Positions 16,625 to 59,497 of a DNA stretch of 64,000 bases are shown here, piece after piece. Made by a program: the position numbers and the translations under genes. The stretch covers positions 1,426,001 through 1,490,000 of the forward strand of contig NC_047076.1 of the NCBI RefSeq assembly GCF_902459465.1, read 5' to 3'. The stretch comes from Asterias rubens. Its lineage: Eukaryota. The notes beneath the pieces were generated by a model. That model had not been told where the DNA came from and made no database searches. It saw nothing but the letters and a program-made list of their open reading frames with translations. The stretch's first letter is position 1. Every line of letters begins with the position of its first letter.

Positions 16625-16870
16625 TTGCCTTGATGCCTCTGTTCATTGCATTGGTGCCCCTGGTCTTTGTCTTGGGCCCCTGGTCATTGCATTGGTGCCC
16701 CTGGTCTTTGCCTTGATGCCTCTGGTCATTGCATTGGTGCCCCTGGTCTTTGTCTTGGGCCCCTGGCCATTGCATTGGTGCCCCTGGTCTTTGCCTTGAT
16801 GCCTCTGGTCATTGCATTGGTGCCCCATGTCTTTGTCTTGGGCCCCTGGTCATTGCCTTGATTGATGCCC
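16625..16870. repeat. Hierarchical tandem repeat, 83-nt period built from 41+42-nt halves
   Basis: Direct reading; duplicate track ORFs offset by exactly 83 nt. Confidence 0.9.
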
Positions 16871-17667
16871 CTTGCCATTGCCTTAGTACTACTCTTCATT
16901 TCTGTGGCGCCCATTCAAATGTTCCAGTAGATATTTCCGTCTCCATCTCAGAGATGCCCTTTATCAACTTGATAAATGCCAGGCAGCCTTGCCCTTACAG
17001 AACCAAAGATCCCACCTGCTGAGTCGAGTACGCTCACCCTTTTTGCCTCATTCCTTGCAAATTGCTCCAAGTGTGCAATCAGCAAGAAATCAATACTAAG
17101 CTCCATCTTTAGAAACCAAAGTCAGAGAGATTCTCTCATTTCTCGCTCCTTTAAGTTTGGATAAGTACTCCACTTATTAGATTGCCATCTTAAAGACAAA
17201 GTTTTTACTGTATGCGAGCATTCAAATTACCCTTTTTGGGATCTAATAAAGATTAGTTGAATTGAATTGAAATGAAATGAATTGTTTTCTAACCATTTGA
17301 TTGTTTTAATCCTAATGTAGATGTATATAATAAAACTAAAATGTGAAAATTTGATTTTGATTTTCGAAGTCACATTTTTGACATATCGCTGAAAAACCAG
17401 AGCAAACATGTCCACCCAGAAAGAATGTTCCCTAATCGGAGAAACGTTACTGACAGTAACACTTGTCAGATTAAACTTTTGGGGCATAAAAACTGATGTA
17501 TCTTTTTACATAACCACCAAGTGATAGTTTCCCAAAATGCTGTAAATTACCAAAAGCCGCTGTAGGCTTTTATATAACACCCAAGCAGATCCTTGCCATT
17601 TGATTGGAGGATTGTCCGTCACGTGATAGCAAATAAAAGTACCATTGCACGCTGAGTCACTCACCGT

Positions 17668-17744
17668 GCTTTTTCGTTCCATCCGAAAAGTACCATTGCA
17701 CGCTGGCAGCGTGCAATGGTACTTTTCGGATGGAACGAAAAAGC
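17668..17744. repeat. Perfect palindrome, 38-bp arms with 1-nt spacer
   Basis: 17668-17705 is the exact reverse complement of 17707-17744. Confidence 0.92.
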
Positions 17745-17904
17745 TGAGTAAAAACATCACTGCGTGCGCGTGTCTTTGGTAACGCAGCAGGTGTTACTGC
17801 AAGAAGGCATAGTAAAATTACTAGCATTCGGCTTCTACAGTTGAAATTGTTTGTTTTGAAAGTTGTATCTTTCAATCAAAATGACAAAGATCTACTTGGA
17901 TGTT

Positions 17905-18080
17905 ATATAAAACAAATAATGAATGTTTTTCATTCGTGCAATGGTGCGAATATGTTCATTCGTTGAAAGCTGGAATATTCCATTCAACTCGGCTCCGCCT
18001 CGTTGAATAGAACATTCCATCTTTCAACTCATGAACATATTCGCACCATTGCACTCATAAACATTCATTATGTGTATACT
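17905..18080. repeat. Imperfect fold-back element, about 80-bp arms
   Basis: GTGCAATGGTGCGAATATGTTCAT pairs with ATGAACATATTCGCACCATTGCAC. Confidence 0.8.
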
Positions 18081-18285
18081 AACCAACAGTTTTTATTGCC
18101 ATTGATTTTAAGAGTGATTACAAAAGAGTGACATTGCCTTCCCTTTAATGAGCTGAAGGGGAAGCTGATTTTTAATAGGAACCCAGGGGCAATTCTTCCG
18201 GAACACTGAAGTCAAATTACTGGATTTACAGGTGTATGTTAATACAAGCTGCCTGCGATTAAATGGATTTGTGGGAAGGCATCTC

Positions 18286-18489
18286 CAGGGTCCAATTTCA
18301 TGAAGCTGTTAACATGAGCAGAAAATTCCGCTAAGCAAGAAATACGGCTAAGCAAGAAATGACCTGGTACTACCATTCGCAGCAATTGTAATTGTAACTG
18401 GCTGGTAACCTCTACTTGCTAAGCAACTTAAAGGTAATTGTTTGCTAAGCAAGTTTTTGTGCTTACGGGCTTTATGAATTTGGGCCCAG
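18286..18489. mobile_element. PIF/Harbinger-like MITE
   Basis: TIR GGNCCAATTTCAT, CAG duplicated on both sides; relatives near 7645-7800, 18490-18620, 46130-46220, 54700-54900. Confidence 0.65.
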
Positions 18490-18737
18490 AAAAGTCTTGC
18501 TTAGCAATAACCAGATTACCAGCCACAATAGCATGAGGTTTGCATTATTGTGATTGGTGCTTAGCAAAGACACTTGGCAATCAGTATTTTATAATAAACA
18601 GCTTTATGAAATTGGGTGCAGACCAATGTAGAAAGGAAAACTGCAAGCACACCGTGTCAAAGAAAGATGAGTGATGAGAGGCAGGGGTTGGAGTGGAGTG
18701 GTTTCAGGACATGTGAATATAAACATACACTTGCCTT

Positions 18738-19117
18738 TTAAAGGCACTGTACACGTTGGGTAATTGTCAAAGACCAGTGTTCTCACTTGGTGTATCCCAT
18801 CATATGCATAAAATAACAAGCCTGTGAAAATTGTGGCTCTATCGGTCATTGAAGGTGCGAGAAAATGATGAAAAAAAAACACCCTTGTTGGACGAATTTG
18901 TGTGCTTTCAAATTGCAATAAAAGACTTCTAGCCAAAAGTCTTTTATTATTTTAGTGAGAAATTACCTCTTTCTCAAAAACTATGTTACTTCAGATGGAG
19001 TCATTTCCCACAATGCCTTATACTAACAACAGCTCTCCAATGCTCGTTACCAAGTCTGTTTGTAAGTTAATATTATAATTTGTTTTGAGTAATTACCAAC
19101 ATGTACCTTCCCTTTAA
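18738..19117. mobile_element. Kolobok-like MITE, family A sub-variant
   Basis: TTAA|AGGCACTGTACACG...TGTACCTTCCCT|TTAA; body shared with family A. Confidence 0.8.
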
Positions 19118-21107
19118 ATACGTACATGACCACAACAGATCCATCAGTTCAGAAGAAAAACTGTCAAGTAATGACTATTATTCCAGAAAGCTGGCAACAT
19201 GATGTGAACCAGTGAAACAAGTACCAGTCTAGCATGGTGTTTTATCACTGGTCTCCCTCCTCAAGGGAACTGGATTAACCAGTGTAGAGATTCATCTGTG
19301 TACAGAAACGAGCGCTGATGAAAAAGACGAACATGTGTGGCGCCGATCACCCAAACACAAACTTATGGCATGGGTACCGTCAATCACTGTTTAACTTAAT
19401 GTTCTATCCACACAAACTGGCATAGGAACCAGTTAAATCAACGTTGTATGAAATCTGGAGTACCCTTGAAAGGAAGACCGACAAGTTCCTCAAAGATTTA
19501 AATTTGTCAGAAGAAAGGTCAACAAGCAGGCCCTCTCAACAAATCGGGAAAACACCAAAATGAGAGTATTGCTGATCAACAACTAGTAGGGATGCGAATG
19601 AGAGGCTGTTACCAGTAACTGTTTCAAGCAATGGCAAATGATCAACCAACAGCAAGTTCAACCGAAACAGTTCTTGGTTCTGAATGAGAAAACGCACCCT
19701 AGACAATGCGAGAAGGACATGGATAAGCCCAAATAATATCATCAGTGGTCCAGAAAAGCATCAATGAGGAACGATATCAAAATGCAAACTCGTGGTACAT
19801 GTACCAGCTAGGCATAGCTGATCAGTAATGGTGAGAAACACCGCTCCTTAGGGACCGATTAGCCTTGATAGGCTGGGGTGTCCATGGATCATGGGCGGAG
19901 GGTCTCGCATGATAAGCAGACAAAATGGTGATCAGCAAACACAAGATGAATCGTGATGAAGTCTTGGTGTGTTTCCTCAAGACAACTTTCAGGAGATGAT
20001 ATTCATAAGTTGGCTGTGATGAGAACCTCAATAATGTACCTTGGTTATCAGTTTCCTTCTTTAAGAAGGTGCAAACTTAGAACCACACTGACTTTCATTT
20101 CATTTGATTTAATTTATTCTGGTTGGTGAAACCAAAAACTCTCAGAAAAGCAAACTTAATCACTGTACTGACCAAGAAAACCATGGAGAGAAGACAAAAA
20201 AAGGAAATTTTAATTTTACATATATATGGGAGAAAAACCCAAGATAATTTATCAAGGGAAAACCCACCCAATCTGGTAGGGACTGAAAACCCTATCCTTA
20301 CATGTACACAGTGCATCCTCCGATTTCATGGTACCCGATGTTCACTAGTTAAAACTCATGAGTCTACGAAAAATAGGTTTGAAGATTCCTTTAACTACAC
20401 AGACACTTAAAAGACACAAGATTGGCCACACTTCATGAACATGCAGTCTACTCACCCTAAATATTCACACATATTGTACGTATGTAGTCAATAGCGCCCT
20501 CGCTAGCCAATAAATCATCAGTTTTATGAGCAATCTATTTTAATGAGAATCCTACATGCTTTAAAACCCTCCAACGTGGCACTTATTCGGTCCCAATGGA
20601 CTCACCCTCATCACAATGTAAGCACTTTGTTTCTGAACATTTTTCATCGGTTAGGGGGTCCGCTATGAACATTTTTCATCGGTTAGGGGGTCCGCTGTGC
20701 ACTTCTTAACAACTTTATTTACATGTGTATCTGGCATGTCTGGATACTGTCTGGGTTATTTGGACTTTCATTGACAATCTGAACACGTACACAAGGCTGC
20801 TGGCAGACTTTTTCCTTGCCCCTATCATTATTGTCTTGTTATTTATCACATAAATTCCAAAACTTTCAAAGGTCAATTTCAAACTGCTTAGGCTTATAAG
20901 CAGAAAATATAGCTAAAAAATTGTATTTGATAAGCAGAAAATAGCAAGAAACCAGTCAACGTTTATGTTCATCACAGTGTATTTTGGCTGGTCACCCATT
21001 TCTACTAAGCAAGAATATATCAAACCCTCGCTTAATAAACTAATCTGAGTGGTTTATCAGCATAAAAAAAAACATGAAAACAAAGAATGAGATTTTATCT
21101 TACGTAC

Positions 21108-21209
21108 CATCATCCTTCTTGGCGAGGTCAACAGGCACGTTGACCCCTGATTCCTTGGGCTGCTTCAAGGGTTCAACGAACTCTTGTCCTGGCTCACCCA
21201 CTCCTTTAC
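21108..21209 (-). CDS. PTPRN: IA-2/PTPRN-like exon 7 (GKGVGEPGQEF...VDLAKKDD)
   Basis: cattttcag acceptor, ATG|GTACGT donor, 102 nt phase 1 to 1; KK dibasic site near the end. Confidence 0.85.
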
Positions 21210-22669
21210 CTGAAAATGAAGTGAAAATAAAACGTTAGGAAGATTGTTCGATATTTTGTTTGCTTGCTTCCTTAATGGAACATTTTAAATGTAGGGTCAT
21301 CGATTGGTTACAACTCCAAACATGTATACACGTAGTTTGAGAGAATTTCCTTTGAAGTAATACAGTTTGGATAACTTTTTAGCCCCCCAAAAACATTTAA
21401 ATGTAATAAATGATTCATAGATGAATGGTTTCTCTAACATTTCTAAGGGTTGGTGTTCATTTGGGTATACTGTTGCCAGAGCTAAAAATCTACCTGCTGT
21501 CACTCACTAAACATGGATGGATTTAACTTTCTTGTGAACATTTTGTGACAGTTTATTTATGGGGTTTTTTTCTAAGCAATTAGACACTGTATTCAGCTTA
21601 TTCTTTCACTTGTGACTTTTAATGCAAATTTCTTAATAATTTGTTGAAAGCAATAGAATGATGAAAATAATAGTTCATGTCTACACCTCTAAGATGTTTA
21701 TTGTGGTTCTTAATTCCATTCAATTGAATCTAAACCACAGAGTGTGCTTTGCTGGTCGTAACCAAAAACTGTTTCGGTCATTGGCCAGTGTTTAACCAAT
21801 GGCCAATCCAACCCAAAAAGTTATTGATTACAGGCCATCAAAACGCACCCTGCATGTACATGTAGGTTAGAAGGGAAATGTAGTCAGATCCCGTATATAA
21901 TTTATACCTGCTATAGTTATTTGTGTAGTCAGGAATACTGACCAAAATGGCTTCTGTAAAATCAAGGACTGTGAAATTTCTCCTTGTAGTTTTGTTTCTG
22001 CATGGTTGCACTTGATCACACCTCACATCCTTCATAAATTATGATTATATATACTCCAGTTATTTATGAAATCAAATGCAACAAAGGTGTGTGAAAAAAT
22101 ATGACAATTTCACAGCACAGCGATGGAAAAACTGATCATGGAGAATACCGGTGCAAAGAGAAGGCTAGAGTGTTACTGTGTTAAGGGCAATAAGGACAAG
22201 TACGCCTCGAGGGATAGTGGTGGTGAAACGCTGTTTATTTCCTTCGGAGTTCATCTCTCTTTTTTTCTCTTTTTTTTTTCCATTTTTTTTTCAGGTCATG
22301 AAACAAATAAGCTGAGTTGTGTGTTTCCAGCACAGAAATGTGAAGGTATGAACAAAATATGAAGAGAAATTGGTGATGAAATTTGTGTACTTTGTGACAA
22401 ATTTTGTGTATTTGTCCAGAGTTGGCTTTAGTGGGCAGCTTGTATCATTGAGCACTGTATAATTAAGTGTATGAGAAAAATTATTTTCAAATTCTTTCCA
22501 ATAGAATGATTGCGCATGATGTCATTTACCGCCATCTTTGATGACAAAAATGGATAAATGTGCAAGTGTGTACACGCTGCACACGACTCACAGCTAATGA
22601 TAGCTTTTTATGCTTGTATGTTTCATCAAAGACGGTACAATAGCCTTCTTCGGCTTCCAACCATCTCAC

Positions 22670-25539: not shown

Positions 25540-25690
25540 AAAGGAAAATTTACTAAAGCGGGATTTGAATCAACGACTTCCGAATTAACGTGCCAGCGCT
25601 CTGTAAATTGAGCTATCTAGCCCTATGTTGGCAATCTCCTATTTTGTCAGTATCTTTATTTGGGGGTAAGTCAGAAGCCGTACAACCTTT
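25540..25690 (-). mobile_element. tRNA-derived SINE, third family (relatives about 36490-36605 and 41170-41340)
   Basis: Minus strand GGGCTAGATAGCTCAATT...GATTCAAATCCC head repeated at three loci. Confidence 0.65.
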
Positions 25691-25736
25691 AAATGGCTTG
25701 TAGCCAGGGATCACATAAGATCCATGTTTTTTTTAC

Positions 25737-26216
25737 CTGTAGATATTCCTTAAGTTGTTGCATCTTATACATTCCTTCCCAGTCATCTCCATCTTCTCCC
25801 GCATCTTCAAGATTGTTCACTCCAATCTTCATGCCTTCATCCGGCCCGCTATACATCTTCAGCAATGATAGATACTTGTCATAGTAGAGGTCGTATAACT
25901 TCTGCAGACTCTCCCTTTCTTCGTCCTTCAGAGTCTGGATAAGCTCCAAGTATTTCTCTCGTATCGCGACACCGTACTCGTCAAACTCATCCCCGCCCAG
26001 CCCGTACTGGTTGATGAGTTCATTGTAGACATCGTAGCGTTGTTTGTACTCGTCGACGACGGCTTGGTAAGCTTGGGCGAGTTCGTCGACGTTGGACCAT
26101 ACTTGCTGCTCCTCGTCTGTCATGGAGGGTTTTTGAGGATTACCCGGGGGTCGGGGGTCAGAGTTGAGAGGGATGATGTTGTGTTTGTAGGGATAGAGAA
26201 CATCTTGAAGGGAATC
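25737..26216 (-). CDS. PTPRN: IA-2/PTPRN-like exon 4, acidic Tyr-rich pro-region (DSLQDVLYPY...QLKEYLQ)
   Basis: 480-nt open exon, ccaacag acceptor, CAG|GTAAAA donor, phase 0 to 0; contains track ORF 25689..26123. Confidence 0.88.
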
Positions 26217-26410: not shown

Positions 26411-27120
26411 CAGAAAAAGACATTTCTCTATAACTTTCAAGATGAAAACTCTTCACAAGTTCAAGGCCTTTTGTTCTTGAAGGGGCACGGCATTTTCCCT
26501 CTGGTAAGGGGCACTTCTATTTGGAAAATGTAAATTAATTTTGTACAAAAACCTTTAAAAAGGGCACCACAGCAAAAGCACAGGGCACCACAGCATTTGC
26601 TGTGGGTCATTCCAAGGCCTGAATGTTGTTTGTACTCGTTTTTTATAAAAAGAGATGGTTCTTTCAGCATCTTGACATGTACAAGCTTTACTTTAAATGA
26701 AATAAATAGTTAATGGCCTGATGTTGCGACCCTAGCAGAGTCTTTCTCGAAGGAGAACTGACTCTGTTAGCGTCGCAACGTCTTGCCATTAACTATTTAT
26801 TGCATTTATACCATTGGTCCTTTTGGTTGGTAAGTTGTTTGCAACAGCTAATTTTATTTTATCCTTTACTTTAAATGTTAACAAAAAATAAAAAATTGTG
26901 TAACCAAAATAGATAAAGTGACATTTTCTAAAGTGCAATGAAAAAGGACATTGACAAAATCCTGGGGGCATTAACAATCGATGCAATTTCACACCAAATG
27001 TAGTTAAAGTTGAAGGAACAAACTGATTGGACTGTACTTTCTCACATCAAGTCATTTACTCAGAAGTAATTGTGCGTCGCAAATTGATGTTCATGTTTTA
27101 AAATACGAATGTCACTGAAA

Positions 27121-27396
27121 AGTGCATGCACCTATGGGTGTCAAGTGCATGCACCTATGGGTGTCAAGTGCATGCACATATGGGTGTCAAGTGCATGCAC
27201 CTATGGGTGTCAAGTGCATGCACCTATGGGTGTCAAGTGCATGCACCTATGGGTGTCAAGTGCATGCACATATGGGTGTCAAGTGCATGCACCTATGGGT
27301 GTCAAGTGCATGCACATATGGGTGTCAAGTGCATGCACCTATGGGTGTCAAGTGCATGCACCTATGGGTGTCAAGTGCATGCACCTATGGGTGTCA
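27121..27396. repeat. 23-nt minisatellite AGTGCATGCAC[C/A]TATGGGTGTCA x12
   Basis: 12 units with a single variable position. Confidence 0.97.
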
Positions 27397-27901
27397 AGTA
27401 CATTTGGGGTCATGTATAAACAACCTGAACGTCTTGAATTTCATCTTTGAAGGGCCATTATCATTTTTCGAAGGGCACTTCCATTAGAAATTCTTAAAGT
27501 CTATGCACCAAGGCCAAGACCGAGGCAACAGAGGGCATGGCCTCCGTGCCCTCTGAGTAAATAGTATAATTCAGCTTTAAAAAATTCTGGAAAATCTACC
27601 AAAATACATCCAGTGTTTTTTTTTATTTGCCGATCCTTTATGCAAAATATTACCTTGATATTACAATTTGGAACTGATGTTTTCATCAGTCGAAAATTCA
27701 TCAGTCGAAAATATTATTGTTTGCTACAGAAAGATTCTGGTATGGCTGCAGCAAATTGGCATGCACCACATCACTATGTACGTGCGTCTCATACTGTCAT
27801 ATTCAAAAACAGTAGCTCTGTATACCTGTAGTAAACTACATGTAATGTTGGTGAAAACAACCGGACATTGACGTAGAGTTTTGCTGATCTTTGAATCCTC
27901 T

Positions 27902-28587: not shown

Positions 28588-29277
28588 TCTAGGTGCCCCT
28601 TGAAGTGTTCTAATAAAAAAAATTAATTTTCTCTTATATGTAGAGGTGCCCGTTACCAAGGAGAAAATGCCTTGTTGCCCTTGCCCCTTCAAAAACAAAG
28701 AATCGCCCTTGCTCTTCTATCTTCGTGCATGTAGAATCGTGCATGTAGAATCGCCCTTGCTCTTCTATCTTCGTGCATGTATTGCCCCTGGTCAATAACT
28801 GCATTGTCTAGGTGCCCCTTGAAGTGTTCTAATAGAAATTTACAGTTTCCTCAGAGAGGTGCCCTTTACCAAGGAGAAAATGCCTTGTTGCCCTTGCCCC
28901 TTCAAAAACAAAGAATCGCCCTTGCTCTTCTATCTTCGTGCATGTATTGCCCCTGGTCAATAACTGCATTGTCTAGGTGCCCCTTGAAGTGTTCTAATAG
29001 AAATTTACAGTTTCCTCAGAGAGGTGCCCTTTACCAAGGAGAAAATGCCTTGTTGCCCTTGCCCCTTCAAAAACAAAGAATCGCCCTTGCTCTTCAACCT
29101 TCGTACATGTATTGCCCCTGGTCAATAACTGCATTGTCTAGGTGCCCCTTGAAGTGTTCTAATAGAAATTTACAATTTCCCCAGAGAGGTGCCCTTTACC
29201 AAGGAGAAAATGCCTTGTTGCCCTTGCCCCTTCAAAAACAAAGAATCGCCCTTGCTCTTCAACCTTCGTACATGTAT
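28588..29277. repeat. 165-nt tandem repeat, about 4 copies
   Basis: Unit starts at 28807, 28972, 29137, plus a diverged first copy at 28588. Confidence 0.95.
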
Positions 29278-30494
29278 TATACATGTATTGTAACATACTA
29301 AGTTTAACGGACTTGCAGTAAATAATGTAGTTTGTACTATGAGCGTGCATAATTTAAAGTCACTTTGATAAATTCTCCTTTTTTATGGGTAGTACTAATG
29401 ATTCAACCGAATCCCTAACAATCATAGTGTTAGCCAGAGGGTGTCTGGGTGTCTTTTGGACAATCTGTTTTAAATTTGGACACCGTGTTTTCAGCTTCCA
29501 GCAATTTTTTTCATCTACCAGCAAATTTCAGCTTTTTCAGCTTCCAGCAAATTTTGACATCATTTTACCAAATCCTGACAAAAAGAATAACCCAACTCTC
29601 TCAGCACAATCAAAATGGAGACTTTCCACAGAATTAAAATCCGAAAAACAATCCGAAACTAACCGATGATCCAGTAAGACAACAATAACAATGCAACTCA
29701 TCATATATGCAAATATTTCCCACTACAGTCAAAAATTAATTCCAAATGAGAGTATAAATAACACCCAAGCAGCAGTTGGTTACTTCCATGACTTCATCAC
29801 AAAGAAAATCATCCCGTCATCATCTCAGACAACCAATGAAGACTACTCCCACGGGGTCTAATGCCTACATGACGTAAATCTACCATGAAAGAAGGAGAAA
29901 ATAAGGTTGCCGTGGGCAACCTGAGGCAAATCACGTAGGAGCGATGGAGCTCTGTTAATCTAGAGGTAGCCGAGTGAAAAACGTGGAGGTGCTGTGGTAA
30001 ACAGCTGTTTGGCATTATAATGGCATTTTGTTCCATCGTAAACTGCAAAATTATTTCACAATATTTGAAATCCATGCTTGTAATTTTCCTTTCTGCTTTA
30101 TTTTCAGTATGATCAACATATAGTATGCCTTCAAAATAATTTATCATAGCCTTTGGAATATACATGTTCCATGCTTTCCAAAAACAACTTAGTCATTTGG
30201 TACAAAGGAACATTTTAAGTTTTTGAAACTCGGCCTTGTTTGCTTATGAAGCTGCAGTCTCTTTCAACTCCTGATGAACAGTGAATTAAAACATTTCTTC
30301 AATTGTCATTATTACTTCCTTCAAGATATTTACCATTAATCGACTGTTTGTTTTTCTTTCCTGAAGTAGTGTCAATAGACATTTTCATTGCAACGTCACA
30401 GCCCAAGTGTTTACCTTGCCTAAAGAGAAAGAGGTTACTCCTCACTAAAATATTAAAAGGCTTCATCTCTGAAGTCTTTTCATATTTTTGTAGG

Positions 30495-48321: not shown

Positions 48322-48405
48322 TTAACTTCCTTGCGGCTGTACTGTAGCTTGCTTCTTCCTTCGTATGGTCTCCACTAATTCTTTATACCTCAACAAACAC
48401 TCCTC
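48322..48405 (-). CDS. DNAJC1: DNAJC1 exon 9, last coding exon (EECLLRYKELVETIRRKKQATVQPQGS*)
   Basis: ttttcag acceptor, EEC..RYK.LVE...KKQ ending, TAA at 48324-48322. Spliced CDS is 1614 nt, 537 aa. Confidence 0.93.
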   Translation of the reverse strand, partial: EECLLRYKELVETIRRKKQATVQPQGS

Positions 48406-48694
48406 CTGAAAATATAAATAATAGAAAGCTTTAAAAATCTTGGCAATGCAGAAATCTAGCTACAGCCATAGCTGTAGCTATCAATTCAGGAATGACCATA
48501 GAGTACCAAGCGCACTTTTAATGAGAGACCACATGACATTTTACAAGGTGCAATTTGCAGTTTTTCCAAAAATAGTTTGCACTCTCCTGAAGACGAGCAA
48601 AGTTTACTGTTTGCAGGCCTATTGATACTTAACGGGGACAACAAATGCAATTGCCTCCATGCCCCCTGGTGCACTTGAAATGCTATGGTAGAAG

Positions 48695-49085
48695 TTAAAG
48701 AAACACATTGCCTTGGATCGGACGAGTTGGTCTTTAAAAAGCGTTTGTAACCGTTTGTTATAAAATGCATATGGATAGAAAGATCTTTTAAAAGTAGACT
48801 ACAATGATCCACACAAATTTGCCTCGAAATTGCGTGGATTTCCTTTTACTTTGCGAACTAACACGGTCGGCCATTTATGGGAGTCAAAAAGTTGACTCCC
48901 ATAAATGGCCGACCGTGTTAGTCGAAGTTTGTGAAAGAAAAACCGTGCATTTTCGAGGAATGTTTGTGTGGATTGTTGTATTCTACTTTGACAACATCTT
49001 TCTCACCATATGCATTTTATAACAAACGCTTGCAAACGCTTTTTAAAGACCAACTCAACCGATCAAAGGCAACGTGTTCCTTTAA
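48695..49085. mobile_element. Kolobok-like MITE, family C
   Basis: TTAA|AGAAACACATTGCCTTGGATCGG...CGATCAAAGGCAACGTGTTCCT|TTAA; central CGGCCATTTATGGGAGTCAA palindrome. Confidence 0.85.
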
Positions 49086-49384
49086 CAATTTCATCATAGG
49101 GTGCCATTTAACCAAGAAGAAAATCTAATAGTTGTTTAATTTACATTCAGATGTTAAATTTACATTCAGGCAAAAGAAGAAAATGCCTTGAAAGAGTTTT
49201 ATACATGGTTGTACAAGAAAATTTACAACTAAAGCCTTTCATAAACTTCAGTTTCTTAATTCTAAACCTCCTTTAAGTTCAGCAAATACATGAATTAAAG
49301 AAAGAAATTGTAGGTCTTGTAACAAAAATCCGATAAAGTTCTGATCTTCAAGAAATCTCAAAGCACAGTTTCAACAAAACTTAC

Positions 49385-49782
49385 TTTTGTCTTTCCCGGT
49401 ACTGCATCCGCAACCTTCTCCCATCTTTCTGATGTTCCTTTGGTGTAAATGGACAAAGCTTTCTCAAAGATCTTCTGTTGTCTCTGCGTCCAGCTGCACG
49501 TCTCGACACCTCCTTGTACTAACACATCCTCCCCATCATCTTGACTCTGTCTGAGGTCTTGGGGCGTCTTACTCGGTTCTGATGTCCCATTAGTTGAAGC
49601 TTCTGTTATAAGCAAAGTTCTATCCACTGCCTTGGATTGGTTTACAACTTTCGGTTTCCTTTTGGTTTGCTTGTTGCTTGTGTTGTCATTTTGTGCGATA
49701 GGTTCTGATGTCGTTATGTCATCATCAGTGAAGGTTTTGCCTGTTTTACTGCTTACCGAGTGCTTTACAGCTCCAGTAATAC
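49385..49782 (-). CDS. DNAJC1: DNAJC1 exon 8, linker and SANT domain 2 (...WTQRQQKIFEKALSIYTKGTSERWEKVADAVPGKTK)
   Basis: 398-nt open exon, phase 1 to 0; WTQ.QQK..E.AL..Y.KG..ERW.KVA..VPGK motif. Confidence 0.93.
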
Positions 49783-49835
49783 CTAAAGATAATTTAGGAA
49801 ATCAAGTTTTAGTTAATATTTATTTATTCTTGCTG

Positions 49836-50003
49836 TGAAGCCAAGGACTCTCAGAAAAGCAAACTTAATCACTGTACTAGCCAAGAACCCAATGGAACCC
49901 ATTCAGGTTGGGACTGAAAACCGAGTCCAGTCCACGTAGGGCCACTGGCGTGATTCGAACCAAGGTCCTAGAGGTGGAAGGCGAGGAAAGATACCACTAC
50001 GCC
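49836..50003 (-). mobile_element. tRNA-derived SINE, second family (relatives about 20125-20290 and 47985-48290)
   Basis: Minus strand GGCGTAGTGGTA (A box), GGTTCGAATC (B box), shared TTTTCAGTCCC.ACC body. Confidence 0.75.
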
Positions 50004-50297
50004 ATAGAGTTATATATAAGAACTAGAGGGCGCACGGGTGATGCTTCTGGCACAAACGCGACGGGACCGCAAGGAGACACGCACGCGCCATTCTGTACGC
50101 GCGTTGAATATAAAACACACGTTGGAGTTTGTGTTTATTGAACGCTACGCGATGCTGTTTTGTTCAACTCACAAAATGGCCGCACAAACACACGCTGTGG
50201 GATGCCAGTTTTGTCAACTTAGAAAATGGCCGCCTGCGCGCATGCCGGGGCGCATAGATAGGCCAGTGCGCCCTCTAGTTCTTATGTATAACTCTAT
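50004..50297. mobile_element. MITE with about 32-bp TIR ATAGAGTTATATATAAGAACTAGAGGGCGCAC
   Basis: One-mismatch inverted ends; superfamily not assignable from the TA/AT flanks. Confidence 0.75.
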
Positions 50298-50624
50298 GCA
50301 CTACTTAGTCCCTTTTCAAAACAATTACTTCGGCTTTGGATTCAGCTTAAGGCTCCATTCTCTCATCTGAAGGCCTGAGTGCATACGCAAAGCACGCACA
50401 ATTTTCTAAACAACCGTCAAGCTAGCCTGAGCCAAATCCAAAGCCGAAGCCGTGGTTTCGAAAAGGGCCTTAGTAATGAAGTTAATAGAGTAATGAATTG
50501 AATACTTCAAGTAGGTGATCTAATAATAATAATAATAATAATAATAAGACTTGTAATGCGCATGTGTCCACCCTGCTGGGTGTTCAAGGCGCAGAAAAAA
50601 CTCTTGCGCAGAAAAAAATCTTAC

Positions 50625-50691
50625 CTTGAGTTGCAGCCTGTACACTGACTACATACCCGCCAGACTTGATCTGTTTAGCCTTCTTGATAAC
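50625..50691 (-). CDS. DNAJC1: DNAJC1 exon 7 (VIKKAKQIKSGGYVVSVQAATQ)
   Basis: ttcag acceptor, AAG|GTAAGA donor, phase 0 to 1; completes SANT1. Confidence 0.88.
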
Positions 50692-51419
50692 CTGAAGCAT
50701 TTCAAATAACAACAAATCTTACTAAGAAAATGTTCACACAATATTTTCTCGTTCTCATAAGACGATCAGAGGAAAACTGATCGAAATGCCAACCAGAAAC
50801 CGGCTCTTATCAGAGCCACCACTACTCACAAAAGAAATTTCTTACATGGTGTCACCGCAAGCCTTACTTACTTCATATTTTATTCAGTTTGAGCAAATGG
50901 TACAAAAGAACTTAAGACAAAACATTCAAACTCCAAGGATGTTTTAGGTGACACCATGTGTTAATTTTCTTTGAGTTGCAGTAGAACAAGTGCATTGACC
51001 ATTCCTCTTCTCAGAACCACAACTTCTCAAAAGAGATTTTACACATGGTGCACAGCAAACGTCACGCGATTGTACTCCCACCATGCAAATGTTAAAGTCC
51101 AACATGTCTTTCAAGGGTCATGTTACACTGGGCAATTTACAGGCAGCTATTTTCAGGCAATCTCTGAGAAGAAGAAGCATTACATTTGAAAGTTCATATA
51201 ATTTTCTAGGGGATCGTAAGACATCGTCTGAAAAAAACCTCAAGTACTACCAAAGTGGTCCTGTGGCATGAACTGCAGTTGGTTGCCTTCAAGTTGGCTG
51301 CAAAATTTGCCTCGTTTGGCAAGGACCTTAGAGCTATCTAAACTCAGAGGGTTTGGAGCCAGTTGTTACCCAGCCGGATAATATTGAACAGATGGGGTAA
51401 TTAGGGCTACTTCTCCTAC

Positions 51420-51539
51420 CTCATCTACTGGTCTGAATATCTCATCAGCGATCTTCTCCCATCTTGCCGTTGTACCACCAGGAAACCTGGCCATTACACG
51501 GATCAGTTTGGTCACTTCATCTTGGCTCCATTCTCCAGC
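51420..51539 (-). CDS. DNAJC1: DNAJC1 exon 6, SANT/Myb domain 1 (AGEWSQDEVTKLIRVMARFPGGTTARWEKIADEIFRPVDE)
   Basis: W..E...L......FPGGT..RWEKIA motif; canonical splice sites, phase 0 to 0. Confidence 0.95.
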
Positions 51540-51610
51540 CTAAAGGAGGTATCAGTAAGATAATAACACTAAGGGTTAGGGTAGAACTCTTGCCATATTT
51601 CATCTTTTTC

Positions 51611-51989
51611 TTAAAGGCAGTGGACACTATTAGTAACTACTCAAAATAATTATTAGCATAAAACCATACTTGGTAACGAGTAATGGGGAGAGGTTGAAAG
51701 TATAAAACACTGTGAGAAACGGCTCCCTCTGAAGTGACGTAGTTTTCAAGAAAGAAGTAATTTTCCACGAATTTGATTTCCAGACCTCAAGTTTAGAACT
51801 TGAGGTCTCGAAATCAAGCATCTTAAAGCACACAACTTCGTGTGACAAGGGTGTTTTTTCTTTCATTATTATCTTGGAACTTCGACGACCAATTGAGCTC
51901 AAATTTTCACATGTTTGTCATTTTATGCATATGTTGAGATACACCAATAGTCAATGGTCTTTGACAACCAATAGTGTCCAGTGCCTTAA
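51611..51989. mobile_element. Kolobok-like MITE, family A (DNAJC1 intron 5)
   Basis: TTAA flanks, TIR, internal palindrome. Confidence 0.85.
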
Positions 51990-52442
51990 ACTCAATTCTT
52001 AAACATTTATGAATTTAGTCTTTTATCTCTAAATTTAAAGGTTCGTTTATTATTAATATATTTCCCTTTCCTGTCATTGGTCGCTGTTGGTTTGCACAAT
52101 TACAAACGAAAATACAAATCATTTCATTTTCCTTTGAAAAAAAAACTGCTTTTAAAAGCCTTGAACCTTTCAGAGAAAGCCAATATGTACAGCATCTGTA
52201 ATCTCATATTGATTGATACCTGCCTGTTAAAACACGTCGCAGAAGTAGAAATTTGTCTACAGTTGCAAAAAAAATTGTTTTTCTGACGGCGACTGATGCT
52301 GTATCTCAACACTGTCAATCTCAATCGTCAATTGATATGTTTCCAATAGTCTTAGCTCAGGCACAGCTTTATCCCAAACAAAAATAAGCTGCCAACTGTT
52401 TTTGTGTCATCACAAAGTCGACCCGAAGGCGGCTTCAAATAC

Positions 52443-52889
52443 CTTAGTTTGTTGTGCTCTGTTTGTGTTTTCTGAAATCGTTTCTGCAGGAGTATAAGTA
52501 ACTGGTTCTGCTGTGGTTGCCTCGTACTCATACAACGGTAGATCCACCCTCCTCCTCTTCTTGACTTTATCTTTCCCTTCATCCTCCTCCTCCTCCTCCT
52601 CTAACTCCGCCTCCGCCTCCTCCTTCATCCGTTTCCTTCTCTCTCTCCACATCTCAATTTCAGATTTGACGCTCAGGAATGTCGAGGGCGCTGAGATGAT
52701 GGTTGAGAGAACGAGGCGGTAGAGCTTACAAGGGAGTGCGTCACTTAGTAAAGGCTTGACTGGCATGAAGGGGTCATCTACTGGATTTTCTTGAGCAGGG
52801 ATCTCTTCGTTGTCTTGGGGGATGGTGGTTCCCGCAGCTTGCCTGTTGGACTTCTTGGATTTCTTTTTCTTTTTTGGGATGATTGATTC
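52443..52889 (-). CDS. DNAJC1: DNAJC1 exon 5 (ESIIPKKKKK...RAQQTK)
   Basis: 447-nt open exon inside track ORF 52410..52895; tgcag acceptor, AAG|GTATTT donor. Confidence 0.9.
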
Positions 52890-52994
52890 CTGCAATTAAG
52901 AAATAACAAGAAAACAAAACTATTGGTGAACCATGTTTTTGTTTACACAAGATAGTAATAGCTCACTTAGCAAGTATGACCAATGCCCAATAGA

Positions 52995-53490
52995 ATAGGG
53001 AATAGTCAAACAGTAGGAGGGTTGACTGTGTACAGTGTAGACACTGTATGTAGATACATTGAAAACACACCATATTGCAGGCGTGCATAGTTTAACTCCA
53101 AACCACAGTGGATGATATTGAATGGCCAGACAGTAGGAGGGTTGACTGTGTACAGTGTAGACACTGTATGTAGAATGTAGATACATTGAAAACACACCAT
53201 ATTGCAGGTGTGCATAGTTTAACTCCAAACCACAGTGGATGATATTGAATGGCCAGACAGTAGGAGGATTGACTGTGTACTATGTAGATGCATTCAACAC
53301 ATACCAGTTTATCTATAATTCTAAACTACAGTGGATGCTAGGGAATGGTCAGACAGTAAGAAGGTTGACTGTGTACTGTGTAGATGCTCTCAAAACACAT
53401 CATATCACAGGATGCCTTAGTTTATCTACCATTCCAAACCATAGTGGATGCTAGGGAATGGTCGTACAGTAGGAGGGTTGACTTTGTACT
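52995..53490. repeat. About 120-nt tandem repeat, 4-5 copies, DNAJC1 intron 4
   Basis: Recurrent CAGTAGGAGGGTTGACTGTGTAC and CCAAACCACAGTGGATG. Confidence 0.85.
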
Positions 53491-53581
53491 GTACGTTACA
53501 GTCAGGAATGGTTAGAGAGAGAGTGGGAAAGTCAATAATGTAATTTGTAAAAAGCAAATGTGTTTTCTGTTTTGTCTTTAC

Positions 53582-53753
53582 CAAATCCAGAAGTCTTTCC
53601 CAATAGATGGACCACAGGACGATGTAATGTCCGACAGTAAGGATGATAAAGAGAAGTATCCCTAGCTCAACCAGACCCATCTTACGAACTCGTCGGTAAT
53701 AGAACACCGGCTCCCGCCAATCAGGAAGACCATGCTCCAGAATATGGTTGTAT
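53582..53753 (-). CDS. DNAJC1: DNAJC1 exon 4 (YNHILEHGLPDWREPVFYYRRVRKM + TM helix + WSIYWERLLDL)
   Basis: GLPDWR.PVFYYRRVRKM signature followed by a hydrophobic helix; phase 2 to 0. Confidence 0.96.
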
Positions 53754-53790
53754 CTTAATAAGGAAGAGAGAGGAACAGATAATAAAACTA

Positions 53791-54138
53791 TTAAAGGCAG
53801 TAGACACTATTGGTAATTACTCAAAATAATTGCTAGCATAAAACCTCACTTGGTAACGAGTAATGGGGAGAGGTTGATAGTATGAAACATTGTGAGAAAC
53901 GGCTCCCTCTGAAGTAACAAAGATTTTGAGAAAGAAGTAATTTTCCACAATTTTGATTTTGAGACCTCAAGTTTCGAAATCAAGCATCTGAAGGCACATA
54001 ACCTCGTGTGACAAGGGTGTTTTTTCCTTTCATAGTTATCTCGCACCTTCGACAACCAAGCATATGTTGAGATACACCAAGTGAGAAGACTGGTCTTTGA
54101 CAACTACCGGTACCAATAGTGTCTGGCAGTGTCTTTAA
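53791..54138. mobile_element. Kolobok-like MITE, family A (DNAJC1 intron 3)
   Basis: TTAA flanks, TIR; internal palindrome partly deleted. Confidence 0.85.
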
Positions 54139-54470
54139 TACGAAGCATTACAAAACAGGTAAAACTTCTTGATTCTTTGGGGTACAGAGAATGGCTTCCT
54201 CATGTCGATCCAATAATCTTCGTAACTCCACCCAACTTGCTATCCATCTTTGCCAAACCGAAAGAAATAAAAACAGCCCCATAACTCTGTTTTAACTATG
54301 CTTAACAATAATTCTTAATTATGTGTTTTGTGTGTATATTTAATCCTTTGTTTTTATGAACCTTTCATTATAAATATTCATAATTTTTATATCAGGTAAG
54401 CCATTATTAAATTGTGTAATGGTTTAATTCAAAGATGTTCTTGTTGCTACACAGAATAAACCATTCTTAC

Positions 54471-54517
54471 CTTTGTCGCATATCTTGATTTTTAAGAATT
54501 TCAGCAACAGCCACCAA
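54471..54517 (-). CDS. DNAJC1: DNAJC1 exon 3 (LVAVAEILKNQDMRQR)
   Basis: ttcag acceptor, AG|GTAAGA donor, phase 0 to 2; J-domain helix IV. Confidence 0.92.
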
Positions 54518-54963
54518 CTGAATTTGACAAAGAAAAAAACACAATAAAAAATATGCCTGCCAAACACTTAACAACTACAAAGAAGGCGATTGCCTCTTTG
54601 CCCCCGATAGCCCCCTTGAAATTTTCGAATAAAATGTAGTTTCCTCGTCATAGAGGTTTCCTTTACCAATTGGAGAAAATGTACCACTATCAAGAACAAC
54701 CAAATTGATGTAATTGATGTTTCACAGACTGAGCTGCTTAAGCACCAAAAAGTTGCTAAGCACAACAAAATTATGCTTACCAGAATAAGGTTACCAGCCA
54801 AACTACCATGTCAAAAGTACTACTTTGGAATGGTATCATGCTCATTTTTGTTAAGCAGAAAATTGTTACGCAATATTTTCTGCTAAAGCCGGTTCTATGT
54901 GATCGGGCCCCGGTTAGGCACAAGTTATTTGTCGTTTTATTTATTGTTGTCCATAGGGCCTAC

Positions 54964-55065
54964 CTGTCTAAACTTTTCCTCTGCATTTTCTTCTTTATTC
55001 TTGTCTGGATGTAGAAGGAGAGACTGCTTCCTGTAAGCCTTGCGGATCTCTGATGAAGTAGCGGT
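54964..55065 (-). CDS. DNAJC1: DNAJC1 exon 2, J domain (TATSSEIRKAYRKQSLLLHPDKNKEENAEEKFRQ)
   Basis: HPD motif; tacag acceptor, CAG|GTAGGC donor, phase 0 to 0. Confidence 0.96.
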
Positions 55066-55790
55066 CTGTAAAAGCATCAAAATAATAAAAGGAATTATAT
55101 TTGGTCCTTGGGAAAAATAGTATGAACAAAATTACAAGGGCTGATCTCATGTAAACACAGTGTTACTGGTGTAAGCTCACAGACTTTTACGTCAGGGCAA
55201 AATAATGAGCTTGCAAATGCAATCACCATTCTTCGCTTTTAAAACTAGTCATCAGGCAGGTCAAGCACTGAACGGAGATGCCACCACTTTTTCATTATAA
55301 AATATATAAATACATTTTTACTCAATCAAATGAGACCTTTTGTAAAAATGTGTTCAATAGTGGTTGCAAGGGTTAGACATGGAAAGATTTTCCGCAGCAT
55401 TTCTGCATTGGAGGCAACATATATCTAGTTTCCGTATCAATCATGCCACCATTTTGTCATTTGTTTAATAAGTTGTAGTTATAATTTTTATATTGATAAA
55501 ATAAAAGAGTTTCTAGAATACTATTTTACTCAATCAATCAAATCATAAATGAGATTGTAAATTATAAAAGCTAGTGGCTGGATACGGAAAGTTTTCCCCA
55601 TTATGTTTGTCAGTTTTATTATAGTGTGACCACGTCAATGTGGACCCAAATTCATTCAGTTCGGGTTGAGCATGGTGGACCAATCTTGATTGTGAATAAT
55701 TAATTATGAACAGATGATCATCATTGACATTGAGTCAATGTGTCAATCAATGATTGACAAGATTTTATTATCATCCGATGCCGCACTTAC

Positions 55791-55967
55791 ACTTTCAACA
55801 CCAAGGAGCTCATAGAAGTTCCCTTGAACTTCCTCCACCAGATCAAACAACTCAAAATCTTCATTATCATATGCTCTTGTACTTGACACAAGACACATTA
55901 AAACACACAAAATGGTACAAAAAGATACATTTTGCGAATGCAACCGTCGTCTGCAGGAGGCTGACAT
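55791..55967 (-). CDS. DNAJC1: DNAJC1 exon 1 (signal peptide and start of J domain, ...RAYDNEDFELFDLVEEVQGNFYELLGVES)
   Basis: gccaacATG start, ELFDLVEEV..NFYE.LGV motif, AGT|GTAAGT donor. Confidence 0.92.
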
Positions 55968-58078
55968 GTTGGCAATATGGCGACACTGGTTAACATCGCT
56001 ATCAGTCGCTGAGTGGTTTATATGCTTCGACGGAAATAAACGCGGGTACCAGTTTTCTTCGGGACCACACATTTGAAATAGCGCCCTCAACGTATACTTT
56101 GGGGTATTATTAAAGGTGCAATCTCTTCTCCCCCCCCCCCCACACCCCCTTTTTATTTCTAGTTCTTTCTCCGACTTTAAATAAACAACTCACAATCTTG
56201 TCATGATTTTACAAACACTTTCATAGAATTTCAATGAATTCAGCCCCCTCAACAATCTCTACCCCACCCTATCTTGCCCCGTGAGGTTAATTCCTAATGA
56301 ATGACCCGATACAGGAATAGCCCCACCACCATAAACAGAGCATAAAAATTAGGTCATATCCCCAGACTGCCCCCCCCCCCCCCCTCGTCCGAAGAATTGT
56401 TTTCCTAATGATAAAATGTTTGGTTTCTCCTCGACCATAGAGAATGGACCAACCTCTCTACCTCTCAAACCCGTGATACCCAGAAAAAAGGGTTATGTCC
56501 AGCCTCTATGGTCCAGCACACGGTTGGCAACACACCCACCCCAACCCCGCCAGACCCGACCCCACCCTTTTCCCGGCCAAAAAAAGTGTGTATACTAATT
56601 GTGGGCGGGGTCATCTGGGTTGTGGTTGTTCAATTCTCAGGTCCCTGTGTTTTTGCAGAGTGTGCACAGTGCATGCACCATGCAGCACACTATGGTCCAG
56701 CACACGGTTGGCAACACACCCACCCCAACCCCGCCAGACCCGACCCCACCCTTTTCCCGGCCAAAAAAAGTGTGTATACTAATTGTGGGCGGGGTCATCT
56801 GGGTTGTGGTTGTTCAATTCTCAGGTCCCTGTGTTTTTGCAGAGTGTGCACAGTGCATGCACCATGCAGCACTAAGCAGTTGCATATTGCAAGCCCGGCT
56901 GTAGGTTTTAATCCACTTCTCATATCTCTCAGTCATTTGACATGGGTTGCTTGCGGAATGCGTACATAAATCGGCACTTAAAACACAAACACAGTGTGTG
57001 TGTGTGATTTGGCCGTGGCATGAGCTACAAAACAGACAAGTTATCATAATAAAACTGTTCATAATAAATAGGAGCTTAAAACGAGTATTTCTCAGCCCTT
57101 TGATTTCTTCGAATGTTTGTGTTTGTATTTCTTCATATATTATGTGATTGTTTGGTTCATATCAAAAAGTAAGATATAGAGTATGCAGTAGAATTTTGCT
57201 AACAGAAAACGACCGTTTTTGTGTTTTATACAGATTGTTTTGAGTTTGGCTAAACCTTCTCGTGTATAACCCAACCACCCGGGCCCGGCCAGACCAAGTG
57301 GTTGTGTATGTGTTGTAAATAATGCATAATGTGCGTTACATGTAGGCTACAAACAGAAGTGGCGTTGTTGACCGAGTGATATTTTCTGCCAAAATCTTTA
57401 TCATAAAAAAATGAGGGAAGTCATGTCGTAAAAAAATTCAGGTTTTGAATTTGTAAAATTTTGCGTCTGTGTGTAGTCCTTGCCAGCCAGGTTTATGGTA
57501 ACATGTGCATCCTATGGTCGTACCACGCAGACAGAAGGAGGCTGGGCGAACCTCGGAGTGTGATATCTAGTTTTGAAATAATTTACGTAAGACGAGAAAC
57601 TTGCGGTCATGTGTAACCACAATCAAGAGACGAAGGGAAACGGTTATGTTGGCACTTGGTTTATTTGATAGTCGGATGCGAGTGGCTGTTCGTGTACGTC
57701 CATTGACAACACATGGGTTACACAGCATGGCAAAGTTAAAACCCTGGTTTTTTCAAAAACATAACGGTACGACGTGCTGTCGGTGTTCTGCGTTTGCATT
57801 ATTGACATTATCACGGTGGGCTGTTCTATGACAGTTTTACACACACACAAGATGGCGGTCGGTTGTAGGTCGGACAGTGAACCACGTCGCTGACACTGAT
57901 AACAGAGTAGGATTGTTAACAAAACGTTCTCATATGGCACTAGGACAGAACAGCGAGCATAAATCTAGCACAGTGCACATGATTAACACACAGTGCGGCT
58001 GCACAGCAAAGCCTCGTGAATTCTCGAGCCGACAACGAACGAAGGTCCCGGTGACTAAGCAAGACAGCAGCGGACGCC
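55968..58078. promoter_or_regulatory. Divergent (bidirectional) promoter region, DNAJC1 / SKIDA1-EPOP-like
   Basis: Start codons 2.1 kb apart and pointing away from each other; CpG-richer than flanks; YY1-like CAAGATGGCGG near 57848-57858. Confidence 0.6.
56505..56872. repeat. 184-nt direct duplication, two near-identical copies
   Basis: TATGGTCCAGCACACGG starts at 56507 and 56691. Confidence 0.95.
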
Positions 58079-59497
58079 ATGGCAAGACACTGTCCAGAGC
58101 TTACGCTGTGCAGCACGGCCGAGATCGAGCAGCAAGCTTCCCACCCGCCCGTTAAATTTGTCAATGGCTTCCAGAAACGTCTTGGCGTCTACATGACTGA
58201 CACCAGAGAAAATGACATTTCAAGCGACAGCGAAACCGATATTTCAAGTTTGGAAATCGACTCTAATTTGTCACATTCGTCAGACTTATCCAATACCGAC
58301 TCGCCAAACTGTGCATTTCTTTCGCAAAATAATGAACATCTGGGGGAGAAATTTTCAACAGCGAACAATTCCCAGCGAAGTGGAAATTTCGATGGCGTCG
58401 ATGCTAAACAACATACGACTCCGTTGCCTGATGAAACTCAAAGTGACAATTCCTTCCGTCAAAACAATTTAGCTTTGAAAAACATCTCTCGGGATGACCT
58501 ACTCCTTCCACTTTCTGTAAACAAGCCCAAGGTAGCTCCGATTTCTCACCAGCGAAATTCGGATGCGGATAGCCCGGGGAAGACGCTGGATTCCAACTCG
58601 AGAGACAAGCCTCTTGTCATCAAAATACGGCGCAGAACGTGGACTGTTTCGGAGAATTCCCAGTGTCACGAATCTATCCAAAATGGCGGCGTCAAGAAAT
58701 CTAAAATCAATGGACCGACTTGCACACAACAAGCAGATACTAATCCAGCCTTTGAACTTTCATCGTCATCAAATTACAACAATAACAATATTGAGGAGTG
58801 GCAAAGCATCGGGGATTGTCTTCCAGATAAGAAACACAAAGCAGCTGAAAAGTTTTTCCCGCCTAAACCAGAAAACAATAAGAAAGTGCTCGAAGCGTCA
58901 AAGACAAAGCATCATCAGCGGCGCAAGTCAAAGAAACTTAAAGGGGAGTTTACCGAACATCGTAAAAAGAAAACCTCACATCAACATCATCATAAAACCA
59001 AACGGAAGAAAAGCAGAGAAAATTCTTTCAAGGAACATTCCAAATCGAACCCACCTCACCCCGGAAAAACTCTTCGATTACCAACCGATCCTCAGAAAGC
59101 GGTGAAGGTTTTAGAGAGAGCTTTGGAGTCAATAAACGCACAAATCAAACAACTCAAGAAAGAGACAAGTCATGGAAACAAACCAAGGTCACACAGAGGT
59201 CTGCGATCCAAAAAATCGTCCAAGAAAAGATTACACAAAGAGACAAGATCGACCAAGATCGAGAAAAAGCCCGACCTTCTTCCAGTAACCATGTCACTCT
59301 TCAAGCTCCATGATTCTTTCTCCATCGTACCGTCATTAATCGTCCGAGACGGTGATCTCCACCCAGCCTACAGCGCGTCGGTGGACCCCAGAGAACCGCC
59401 AGCAAACCACCCTATTTGGCGGTGGAGGATCGGACAAACTCCGTTACCGAAACCAACAGCACACGATAATCAAGTTATGGACTGGTTGAATAACTGA
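58079..59497 (+). CDS. SKIDA1: 472-aa mostly disordered, Lys/Ser-rich protein with a SKIDA1/EPOP-type C-terminal region
   Basis: Longest ORF in the window; gccATGG context with in-frame stop at 58052; basic stretches; C-terminal PSLIVRDGDLHPAYS...PP..HPIWRWRIG resembles the SKIDA1/EPOP C-terminus as I recall it. No SKI/DACH domain is visible, so the symbol is tentative. Confidence 0.75.
   Translation: MARHCPELTLCSTAEIEQQASHPPVKFVNGFQKRLGVYMTDTRENDISSDSETDISSLEIDSNLSHSSDLSNTDSPNCAFLSQNNEHLGEKFSTANNSQRSGNFDGVDAKQHTTPLPDETQSDNSFRQNNLALKNISRDDLLLPLSVNKPKVAPISHQRNSDADSPGKTLDSNSRDKPLVIKIRRRTWTVSENSQCHESIQNGGVKKSKINGPTCTQQADTNPAFELSSSSNYNNNNIEEWQSIGDCLPDKKHKAAEKFFPPKPENNKKVLEASKTKHHQRRKSKKLKGEFTEHRKKKTSHQHHHKTKRKKSRENSFKEHSKSNPPHPGKTLRLPTDPQKAVKVLERALESINAQIKQLKKETSHGNKPRSHRGLRSKKSSKKRLHKETRSTKIEKKPDLLPVTMSLFKLHDSFSIVPSLIVRDGDLHPAYSASVDPREPPANHPIWRWRIGQTPLPKPTAHDNQVMDWLNN

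Follow-up and report, generated by a model that had tools for sequence, protein, structure and literature searches.

A SKI/DACH-less SKIDA1/EPOP-family gene in the starfish Asterias rubens, apparently shortened from an ancient two-domain gene

SKIDA1 and EPOP are regarded in a 2022 review as vertebrate innovations of PRC2.1, the ancestor of which is held to have arisen in early vertebrates, and EPOP together with its BC box is considered mammal-specific (PMC8864842). Our literature searches found no paper on invertebrate SKIDA1/EPOP orthologues. An intronless gene of the starfish Asterias rubens, the product of which ends in an EPOP-type tail and carries no SKI/DACH domain, raises the question of how old this family is and which architecture came first. 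According to the original prediction, made from the letters of the DNA, this is the unduplicated ancestor-type gene with an EPOP-like architecture, and its C-terminal module predates vertebrates. We analyzed the gene within a window of 64 kb, by which we mean the whole stretch of DNA under study, and compared it to its relatives in other animals.

The open reading frame and its conserved parts

The intronless ORF of 472 aa plus stop codon is present at positions 58079–59497 on the forward strand, including the predicted C-terminus, coiled-coil stretch and KPLVIKIRRR motif. Based on the ORF itself, Pfam, a PDB match and the alignment with a homologue from the starfish Patiria, we annotate it as the single-exon CDS of a SKI-less SKIDA1/EPOP-family orthologue. 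It is by far the longest non-repeat ORF of the window. The next-longest ORFs, of 230 and 186 aa, both lie within a minisatellite (1285–1723, 21 nt x 21 copies) which is the source of these spurious frames; as the runners-up are repeat artefacts, the 472-codon ORF is not a product of chance. The start codon lies in the context gccATGg and is preceded by an in-frame TGA 8 codons upstream (58052–58054, forward strand). The sequence between TGA and ATG is purine-rich, unlike a splice acceptor, and contains no pyrimidine-rich acceptor tract. In the alignment with the Patiria protein the start Met falls on an internal 'MAR', and an ENA assembly record holds a protein with a single difference, I16L, from the window protein.

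The protein had been described as disordered and basic, which agrees with a pI of 9.68 and a fraction of 69% polar, charged, Pro or Gly residues. Its N-terminal third is acidic and serine-rich. Residues 261–405 (58859–59293, forward strand) form a very basic, Lys/Arg/His-rich and NLS-like segment with a net charge of +32, within which an amphipathic helix is located. Judged by its sequence, the product appears to be a nuclear-type, intrinsically disordered, basic protein.

The EPOP-type module at the C-terminus comprises residues 406–460 (59294–59458, forward strand). A short helix (410–413) is followed by a loop, a beta-hairpin (420–429, DGDL-HP) and a second loop containing HPIWRW-IG, as delineated from Pfam, PDB chain 9xzi_D, an alignment of 36 proteins, an AlphaFold model and the published structure (PMC12901234). 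The predicted homology of this module to SKIDA1/EPOP was borne out in both search directions. Pfam EPOP (PF15223) scored 29.3 bits against the window protein (curated cutoff 25) with an E-value of 8.5e-7, aligning residues 355–463 to profile positions 301–410 of 414, and human EPOP chain 9xzi_D matched residues 406–460 with an E-value of 2.1e-7 in HMMER. Conversely, a two-sequence starfish profile, built from the last 143 residues of the window protein and the Patiria homologue, was searched exhaustively against 1.84 billion proteins and returned 49 hits, each matched at its own C-terminus or close to it. Those hits that are named in their source are all SKIDA1 or EPOP, from amphibians, reptiles, fish and a whale; the remainder include unnamed invertebrate relatives, among them uncharacterised echinoderm and hemichordate proteins and one protein from Nematostella. 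Two of the 49 (P0014, P0047) lack the HP.W.W part and are probably spurious. With its presence in echinoderms, hemichordates and Nematostella the module does predate vertebrates, as had been proposed. When the window protein was searched against a protein atlas, only composition-driven look-alikes (LCOR/PALI-type, PWWP2A) were retrieved.

PDB entry 9XZI is the crystal structure of SUZ12-RBBP4-PHF19-EPOP determined by Gong et al. (PMC12901234). In this structure L315 and F319 of the short EPOP helix dock on the ZnB helix and zinc finger of SUZ12, the interface with PRC2 is shaped by prolines P320, P322, P323 and P335, and the beta-hairpin rests on SUZ12 ZnB and RBBP4's N-terminal helix; deletion of EPOP residues 317–321 abolished PRC2 binding (PMC12901234). 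According to the HMMER alignment, EPOP residues L315, F319, P323, L325, D330-L333 and P335 correspond to L410, F414, P418, L420, D424-G-D-L427 and P429 of the window protein. Positions F408, F414, P418, L420, G425, L427, P429, H444, P445, W447, W449 and G452 are each kept in 32–36 of the 36 family members. The AlphaFold model, built on the 36-member alignment, places a helix at 410–413 and hairpin strands at 420–423 and 426–429 (pLDDT about 94), and the elements follow one another as in EPOP(C). Both the SUZ12/RBBP4-contact residues and the helix-loop-hairpin-loop order are thus found in the starfish protein, except for the prolines and the cysteine of loop L1: P320-C321-P322 of EPOP is replaced by S415-I416-V417, so that part of the interface differs. 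When the tail model was compared to the PDB by Foldseek, 9xzi_D ranked at the top without reaching significance (E 4.2, 27 columns), the query being a monomer model of a peptide that folds on binding.

The full-length alignment of ambulacrarian proteins shows five colinear blocks, namely SKI/DACH, RFVNGFQ with LS.LEIDSNLS, LVLKK..W.V, a helix and the tail. Only block 1 (SKI/DACH) is missing from the window protein, Patiria, sea cucumbers and, less clearly, brittle stars. Block 2 spans residues 25–66 (58151–58276, forward strand), where 'KFVNGFQ' precedes the acidic/serine stretch 'SETDISSLEIDSNLS'. Block 3 at residues 177–190 (58607–58648, forward strand), KPLVIKIRRRTWTV, matches the ambulacrarian 'LVLKK...W.V' motif. 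Both were delineated by alignment and motif scan. Block 4 is the amphipathic helix at residues 338–362 (59090–59164, forward strand), which is supported by AlphaFold (pLDDT about 92), by alignments and by the extent of the profile hits. It shows a 3-4 hydrophobic repeat (V342, L345, L349, I352, I356, L359) and is kept among echinoderms; it is not detectable in vertebrates, and in the motif scan blocks 2–4 were specific to Ambulacraria. The coiled-coil helix and KPLVIKIRRR, which had been put forward as candidate binding sites, are accordingly conserved blocks of the ambulacrarian alignment with a putative binding role. A conserved EPOP-type N-terminal BC box was not found in the window protein. 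A loose pattern for the Elongin BC box matched only at residues 7–16; neither Patiria nor the other ambulacrarians have this match, 34% of shuffled sequences give one as well, and it was discarded.

The missing SKI/DACH domain and the neighbouring genes

SKIDA1 proper is characterized by an N-terminal PF02437 domain. The window protein has no match to Pfam PF02437 (SKI/SNO/DAC), and the same holds for all ten open pieces of the 2.1-kb intergenic region upstream of the gene. Searching by tblastn with four SKI/DACH domains retrieved nothing in the entire 64-kb window, including the 58 kb upstream, and nothing in the 10-kb flanks of the genes of Patiria, Amphiura and Apostichopus. The same queries served as positive controls and cross-detected the domains of urchin and acorn worm at 1e-11 to 1e-17. 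The anticipated absence of the domain was therefore confirmed for the ORF, the upstream open pieces and the 64-kb window. We also considered a SKI remnant in the starfish N-terminus ('FQKRL' vs 'FHKRL'); a family-specific HMM gave no alignment there with filters off, and the resemblance was put down to chance.

A DNAJC1-like gene is located head-to-head to the ORF (48334–55966, reverse strand), as revealed by tblastn of Patiria exons and the Patiria gene call (Pfam DnaJ, Myb). It encodes a J domain, two SANT/Myb domains and two hydrophobic segments, the first of which is an N-terminal anchor. Because of the two hydrophobic segments and the domain order we assign it to DNAJC1 rather than DNAJC2; comparison of the SANT exon with the PDB did not separate the two. 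Since this upstream neighbour is transcribed divergently, a distant upstream SKI exon is unlikely. The shared 2.1-kb intergenic region (55967–58078) is probably a bidirectional promoter and has no SKI/DACH-coding potential.

The same intergenic region contains a perfect 184-nt tandem duplication (two copies, 56506–56872), which is C-rich with poly-C flanks and looks recent. A minisatellite at 53010–53288 (127 nt x 2.3) lies within an intron of the DNAJC1-like gene, and further minisatellites of the window are found at 16613–16860 (21/83 nt), 27120–27403 (23 nt x 12) and 28747–29278 (165 nt x 3.2). Pfam gave no match at E < 0.01 for an acidic, helical-looking ORF of 144 aa at 25689–26123 on the reverse strand, in which D, E, Y, L and K abound; it could represent a small gene or an exon.

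In Patiria the gene is placed between a head-to-head gene with DnaJ and two Myb domains and a PHD/zf-HC5HC2H gene downstream. The latter, at locus positions 16560–21593, is AF10: its PZP exon scored 67.5 bits with AF10 versus about 31 or less with PHF14, BRPF1 and JADE. In human 10p12.31, SKIDA1, MLLT10 and DNAJC1 are listed as adjacent (PMC11361830). The starfish gene hence occupies the orthologous position, with a DNAJC1-like gene beside it in the window and both a DNAJC1-like gene and AF10 flanking it in Patiria. DNAJC1 and AF10 were looked for without success within 10 kb to each side of the loci in urchin, Saccoglossus, Amphiura, Apostichopus and Ptychodera.

Relatives and the history of the SKI/DACH domain

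The sole close homologue of the window protein is that of Patiria miniata (530 aa, locus coordinates 10001–11593), for which the RefSeq model is a single exon without SKI/DACH. Identity between the two starfish proteins is 39% overall and 77% in the tail when counted column by column. The Patiria protein falls below Pfam EPOP detection despite this similarity of the tails, and its RefSeq name, 'probable serine/threonine-protein kinase mkcB', is apparently a low-complexity artefact, as there is no kinase domain. A maximum-likelihood tree of twelve ambulacrarian proteins reproduced the classes, with holothurians grouping with echinoids, and placed the window protein as sister to Patiria (support 100/99). 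Because the gene tree follows the species tree, we regard the ambulacrarian genes as single-copy orthologues in which echinoderms lost SKI/DACH two or more times, besides the losses in Ptychodera and in the mammalian EPOP lineage. The tree and the neighbouring genes in the window and in Patiria both speak for an unduplicated orthologue, as had been predicted.

Ski_Sno_DHD and the EPOP tail are found together in proteins of S. purpuratus, Diadema and Saccoglossus as well as in an urchin-like ENA protein. In Saccoglossus both parts are encoded in one exon of 2391 nt; a single intron is present in the S. purpuratus gene. Several unnamed invertebrate-type proteins likewise carry SKI/DACH and tail. 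For one of them the nearest atlas cluster consists mostly of cnidarian proteins; 84% of its members carry Ski_Sno and 19% EPOP. Most vertebrate hits carry both domains, including source-named EPOP proteins of a caecilian, a toad and a lizard. These non-mammalian two-domain proteins named EPOP agree with the SKI-bearing 'SKIDA1-like' gene from which mammalian EPOP derives (PMC8864842). The genes of starfish, brittle star and sea cucumber are without SKI/DACH.

Ptychodera flava shows an intermediate state: SKI/DACH sequence is recognisable in frame just 5' of the annotated start, with 46% identity to Saccoglossus over 184 aa, and is interrupted by in-frame stops. At this locus the SKI/DACH homology with several in-frame stops extends over 9824–10051, the annotated start is at 10001, and the start Met of the annotated protein falls within the final ~24 domain positions. 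Unless the stops are assembly errors, the locus seems to show a domain on its way to being lost. For Diadema antillarum a second entry of 540 aa exists next to that of 825 aa, in the same 90% cluster and on a different contig. It is without the first ~285 residues including SKI/DACH, which puts FVNGF at residue 58 rather than 343. Possible explanations are a haplotig whose gene model is truncated, or an urchin copy or isoform devoid of SKI.

As SKI/DACH and tail occur together in urchins, Saccoglossus, cnidarian-type proteins and non-mammalian 'EPOP', we conclude that the two-domain form is ancestral and the starfish form derived. At this point the original prediction does not hold: the SKI-less starfish gene is no ancestor-type prototype but a derived form parallel to mammalian EPOP. 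We accordingly see the absence of SKI/DACH from the starfish gene as a secondary loss, by which an ancient two-domain gene was truncated convergently to an EPOP-like form.

Two other histories would explain the same architecture. The SKI-less form could itself be ancestral and SKI/DACH a later gain of vertebrate SKIDA1, which would fit with the domain being missing in starfish, brittle star and sea cucumber alike. This is opposed by the two-domain proteins of echinoids, Saccoglossus (in one exon), cnidarian-type and non-mammalian vertebrate EPOP sequences and by the domain decaying in place in Ptychodera. It is further opposed by the N-terminal blocks of the starfish protein, which are homologous to the region downstream of SKI in full-length proteins: block 2 sits downstream of the SKI/DACH domain in the urchin and acorn-worm proteins, and the Patiria N-terminus aligns to the Saccoglossus sequence directly after the SKI domain. 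We hold a late gain to be highly improbable. Alternatively, the gene might be an ordinary two-domain SKIDA1 with its SKI/DACH exon far upstream or unannotated, and the intron of the S. purpuratus gene shows that splicing is possible within the family. Against this, a stop codon ends the starfish frame 8 codons upstream of the ATG with no acceptor-like tract in between. Pfam gave nothing in the upstream open pieces, and tblastn remained blank over the window including the 58 kb upstream, most of which lies beyond the divergent gene, as well as 10 kb to either side in Patiria, Amphiura and Apostichopus. The RefSeq model of Patiria is a single exon without the domain, and the position of Met1 is conserved with Patiria. 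A hidden exon is thus considered very unlikely. Secondary loss remains our preferred reading. Extended to the whole family, it would describe a cnidarian-bilaterian PRC2 accessory composed of SKI/DACH, linker and a putative SUZ12-docking tail, which lost SKI/DACH independently at least four times, in asterozoans, sea cucumbers, Ptychodera and the mammalian EPOP lineage; to this broader scenario we give slightly less than an even chance.

Putative role and comparison with known proteins

Compared to vertebrate SKIDA1 (C10orf140), the starfish gene shares the PF15223 tail, the long disordered middle and the AF10/MLLT10 and DNAJC1 neighbourhood, the AF10 side being taken from Patiria. It differs in having no SKI/DACH domain and in length (472 aa versus roughly 780–900), and its FVNGFQ, LEIDSNLS, LVIKIRRRTW and helix blocks are undetectable in the vertebrate proteins. 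Mammalian EPOP (C17orf96, PDB 9XZI) is SKI-less and mostly disordered like the starfish protein and ends in a tail of the SUZ12/RBBP4-docking type, docking being predicted for the starfish; counterparts of L315, F319, P323, L325, DGDL, P335 and HPxWxW-G are all present. In contrast to EPOP, which lost the domain independently, the starfish protein has no conserved Elongin BC box, its loop L1 is not proline-rich, and overall it is basic rather than proline-rich. The nearest full-length relatives are the SKI/DACH and tail proteins of sea urchins and Saccoglossus (e.g. S. purpuratus LOC105440533), single-copy orthologues with blocks 2–5 in colinear order, which unlike the starfish gene keep SKI/DACH and a linker of about 250 aa. 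The sole published hint of an invertebrate relative is Drosophila Corto, to which the EPOP tail is weakly similar (PMC12901234). Corto or insect proteins were not recognisable among the starfish profile hits, many of the 49 being unnamed.

We consider it probable that the gene is an asteroid-type single-copy SKIDA1/EPOP orthologue with secondarily lost SKI/DACH, the tail of which docks on PRC2 and makes it an EPOP-style modulator. By analogy to the EPOP crystal structure, residues 406–460 would dock on the SUZ12 ZnB-helix/zinc-finger surface and on the N-terminal helix of RBBP4. The docked tail would then compete with subunits of the JARID2/AEBP2 type, giving rise to a PRC2.1-type subcomplex in an invertebrate. 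Having no SKI/DACH domain, the protein would be devoid of putative DNA or chromatin targeting and most likely act as a modulator of PRC2, not as a recruiter. FVNGFQ/LEIDSNLS, LVIKIRRRTW and the amphipathic helix may serve as additional partner or self-association sites; for helix 338–362, self-association or an EPOP-like control of dimers is a matter of speculation.

A different function is conceivable for a true member of the family if the echinoderm tail binds a partner other than PRC2, or if PRC2 binding is confined to vertebrates. Such a role might be suspected from loop L1, which is unlike that of EPOP, from the restriction of blocks 2–4 to Ambulacraria, and from our literature searches, which found no invertebrate PRC2 proteomics mentioning SKIDA1. 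SUZ12 and RBBP4/p55 are core PRC2 subunits conserved across animals, which argues against it. Moreover, the positions kept from cnidarian-type to mammalian proteins are those contacting SUZ12 and RBBP4 in 9XZI, and we rate a function apart from PRC2 as rather unlikely. The fast evolution of the gene, with 39% identity to Patiria, and the partly decayed Ptychodera locus could also point to a relic or pseudogene that is decaying after loss of a functional SKI/DACH domain. However, all 472 codons are intact, and the protein of the ENA assembly record differs by only one residue. From asteroids, ophiuroids, holothurians and echinoids to hemichordates, sharply conserved blocks stand amid linkers that diverge, and the tail is 77% identical to that of Patiria. 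A decaying gene thus has next to no probability, and a single-copy orthologue modulating PRC2 in the manner of EPOP remains the reading we favor.

In summary, the view of an early-vertebrate origin is outdated on the basis of the sequences compared here, with the docking-type module and the SKI/DACH-tail architecture occurring in echinoderms and hemichordates and, at profile level, in cnidarians. The UniRef label of the urchin protein already reads 'SKI/SNO/DAC domain-containing', with Pfam matches precomputed. As the invertebrate homologues are already public as "uncharacterized" or misnamed proteins, the finding corrects and refines the existing picture and does not add a new kind of system. 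If the reading of repeated loss is true, linker and tail half would constitute a self-sufficient PRC2.1 modulator, and EPOP-type PRC2.1 subcomplexes would exist in invertebrates. The repeated natural "EPOP-like" truncations make embryos of sea urchin (with the domain) and starfish (without it) tractable for studying the role of SKI/DACH in PRC2 targeting, and the same embryos may serve to test whether disruption of the PRC2 dimer by the tail is an ancient function.
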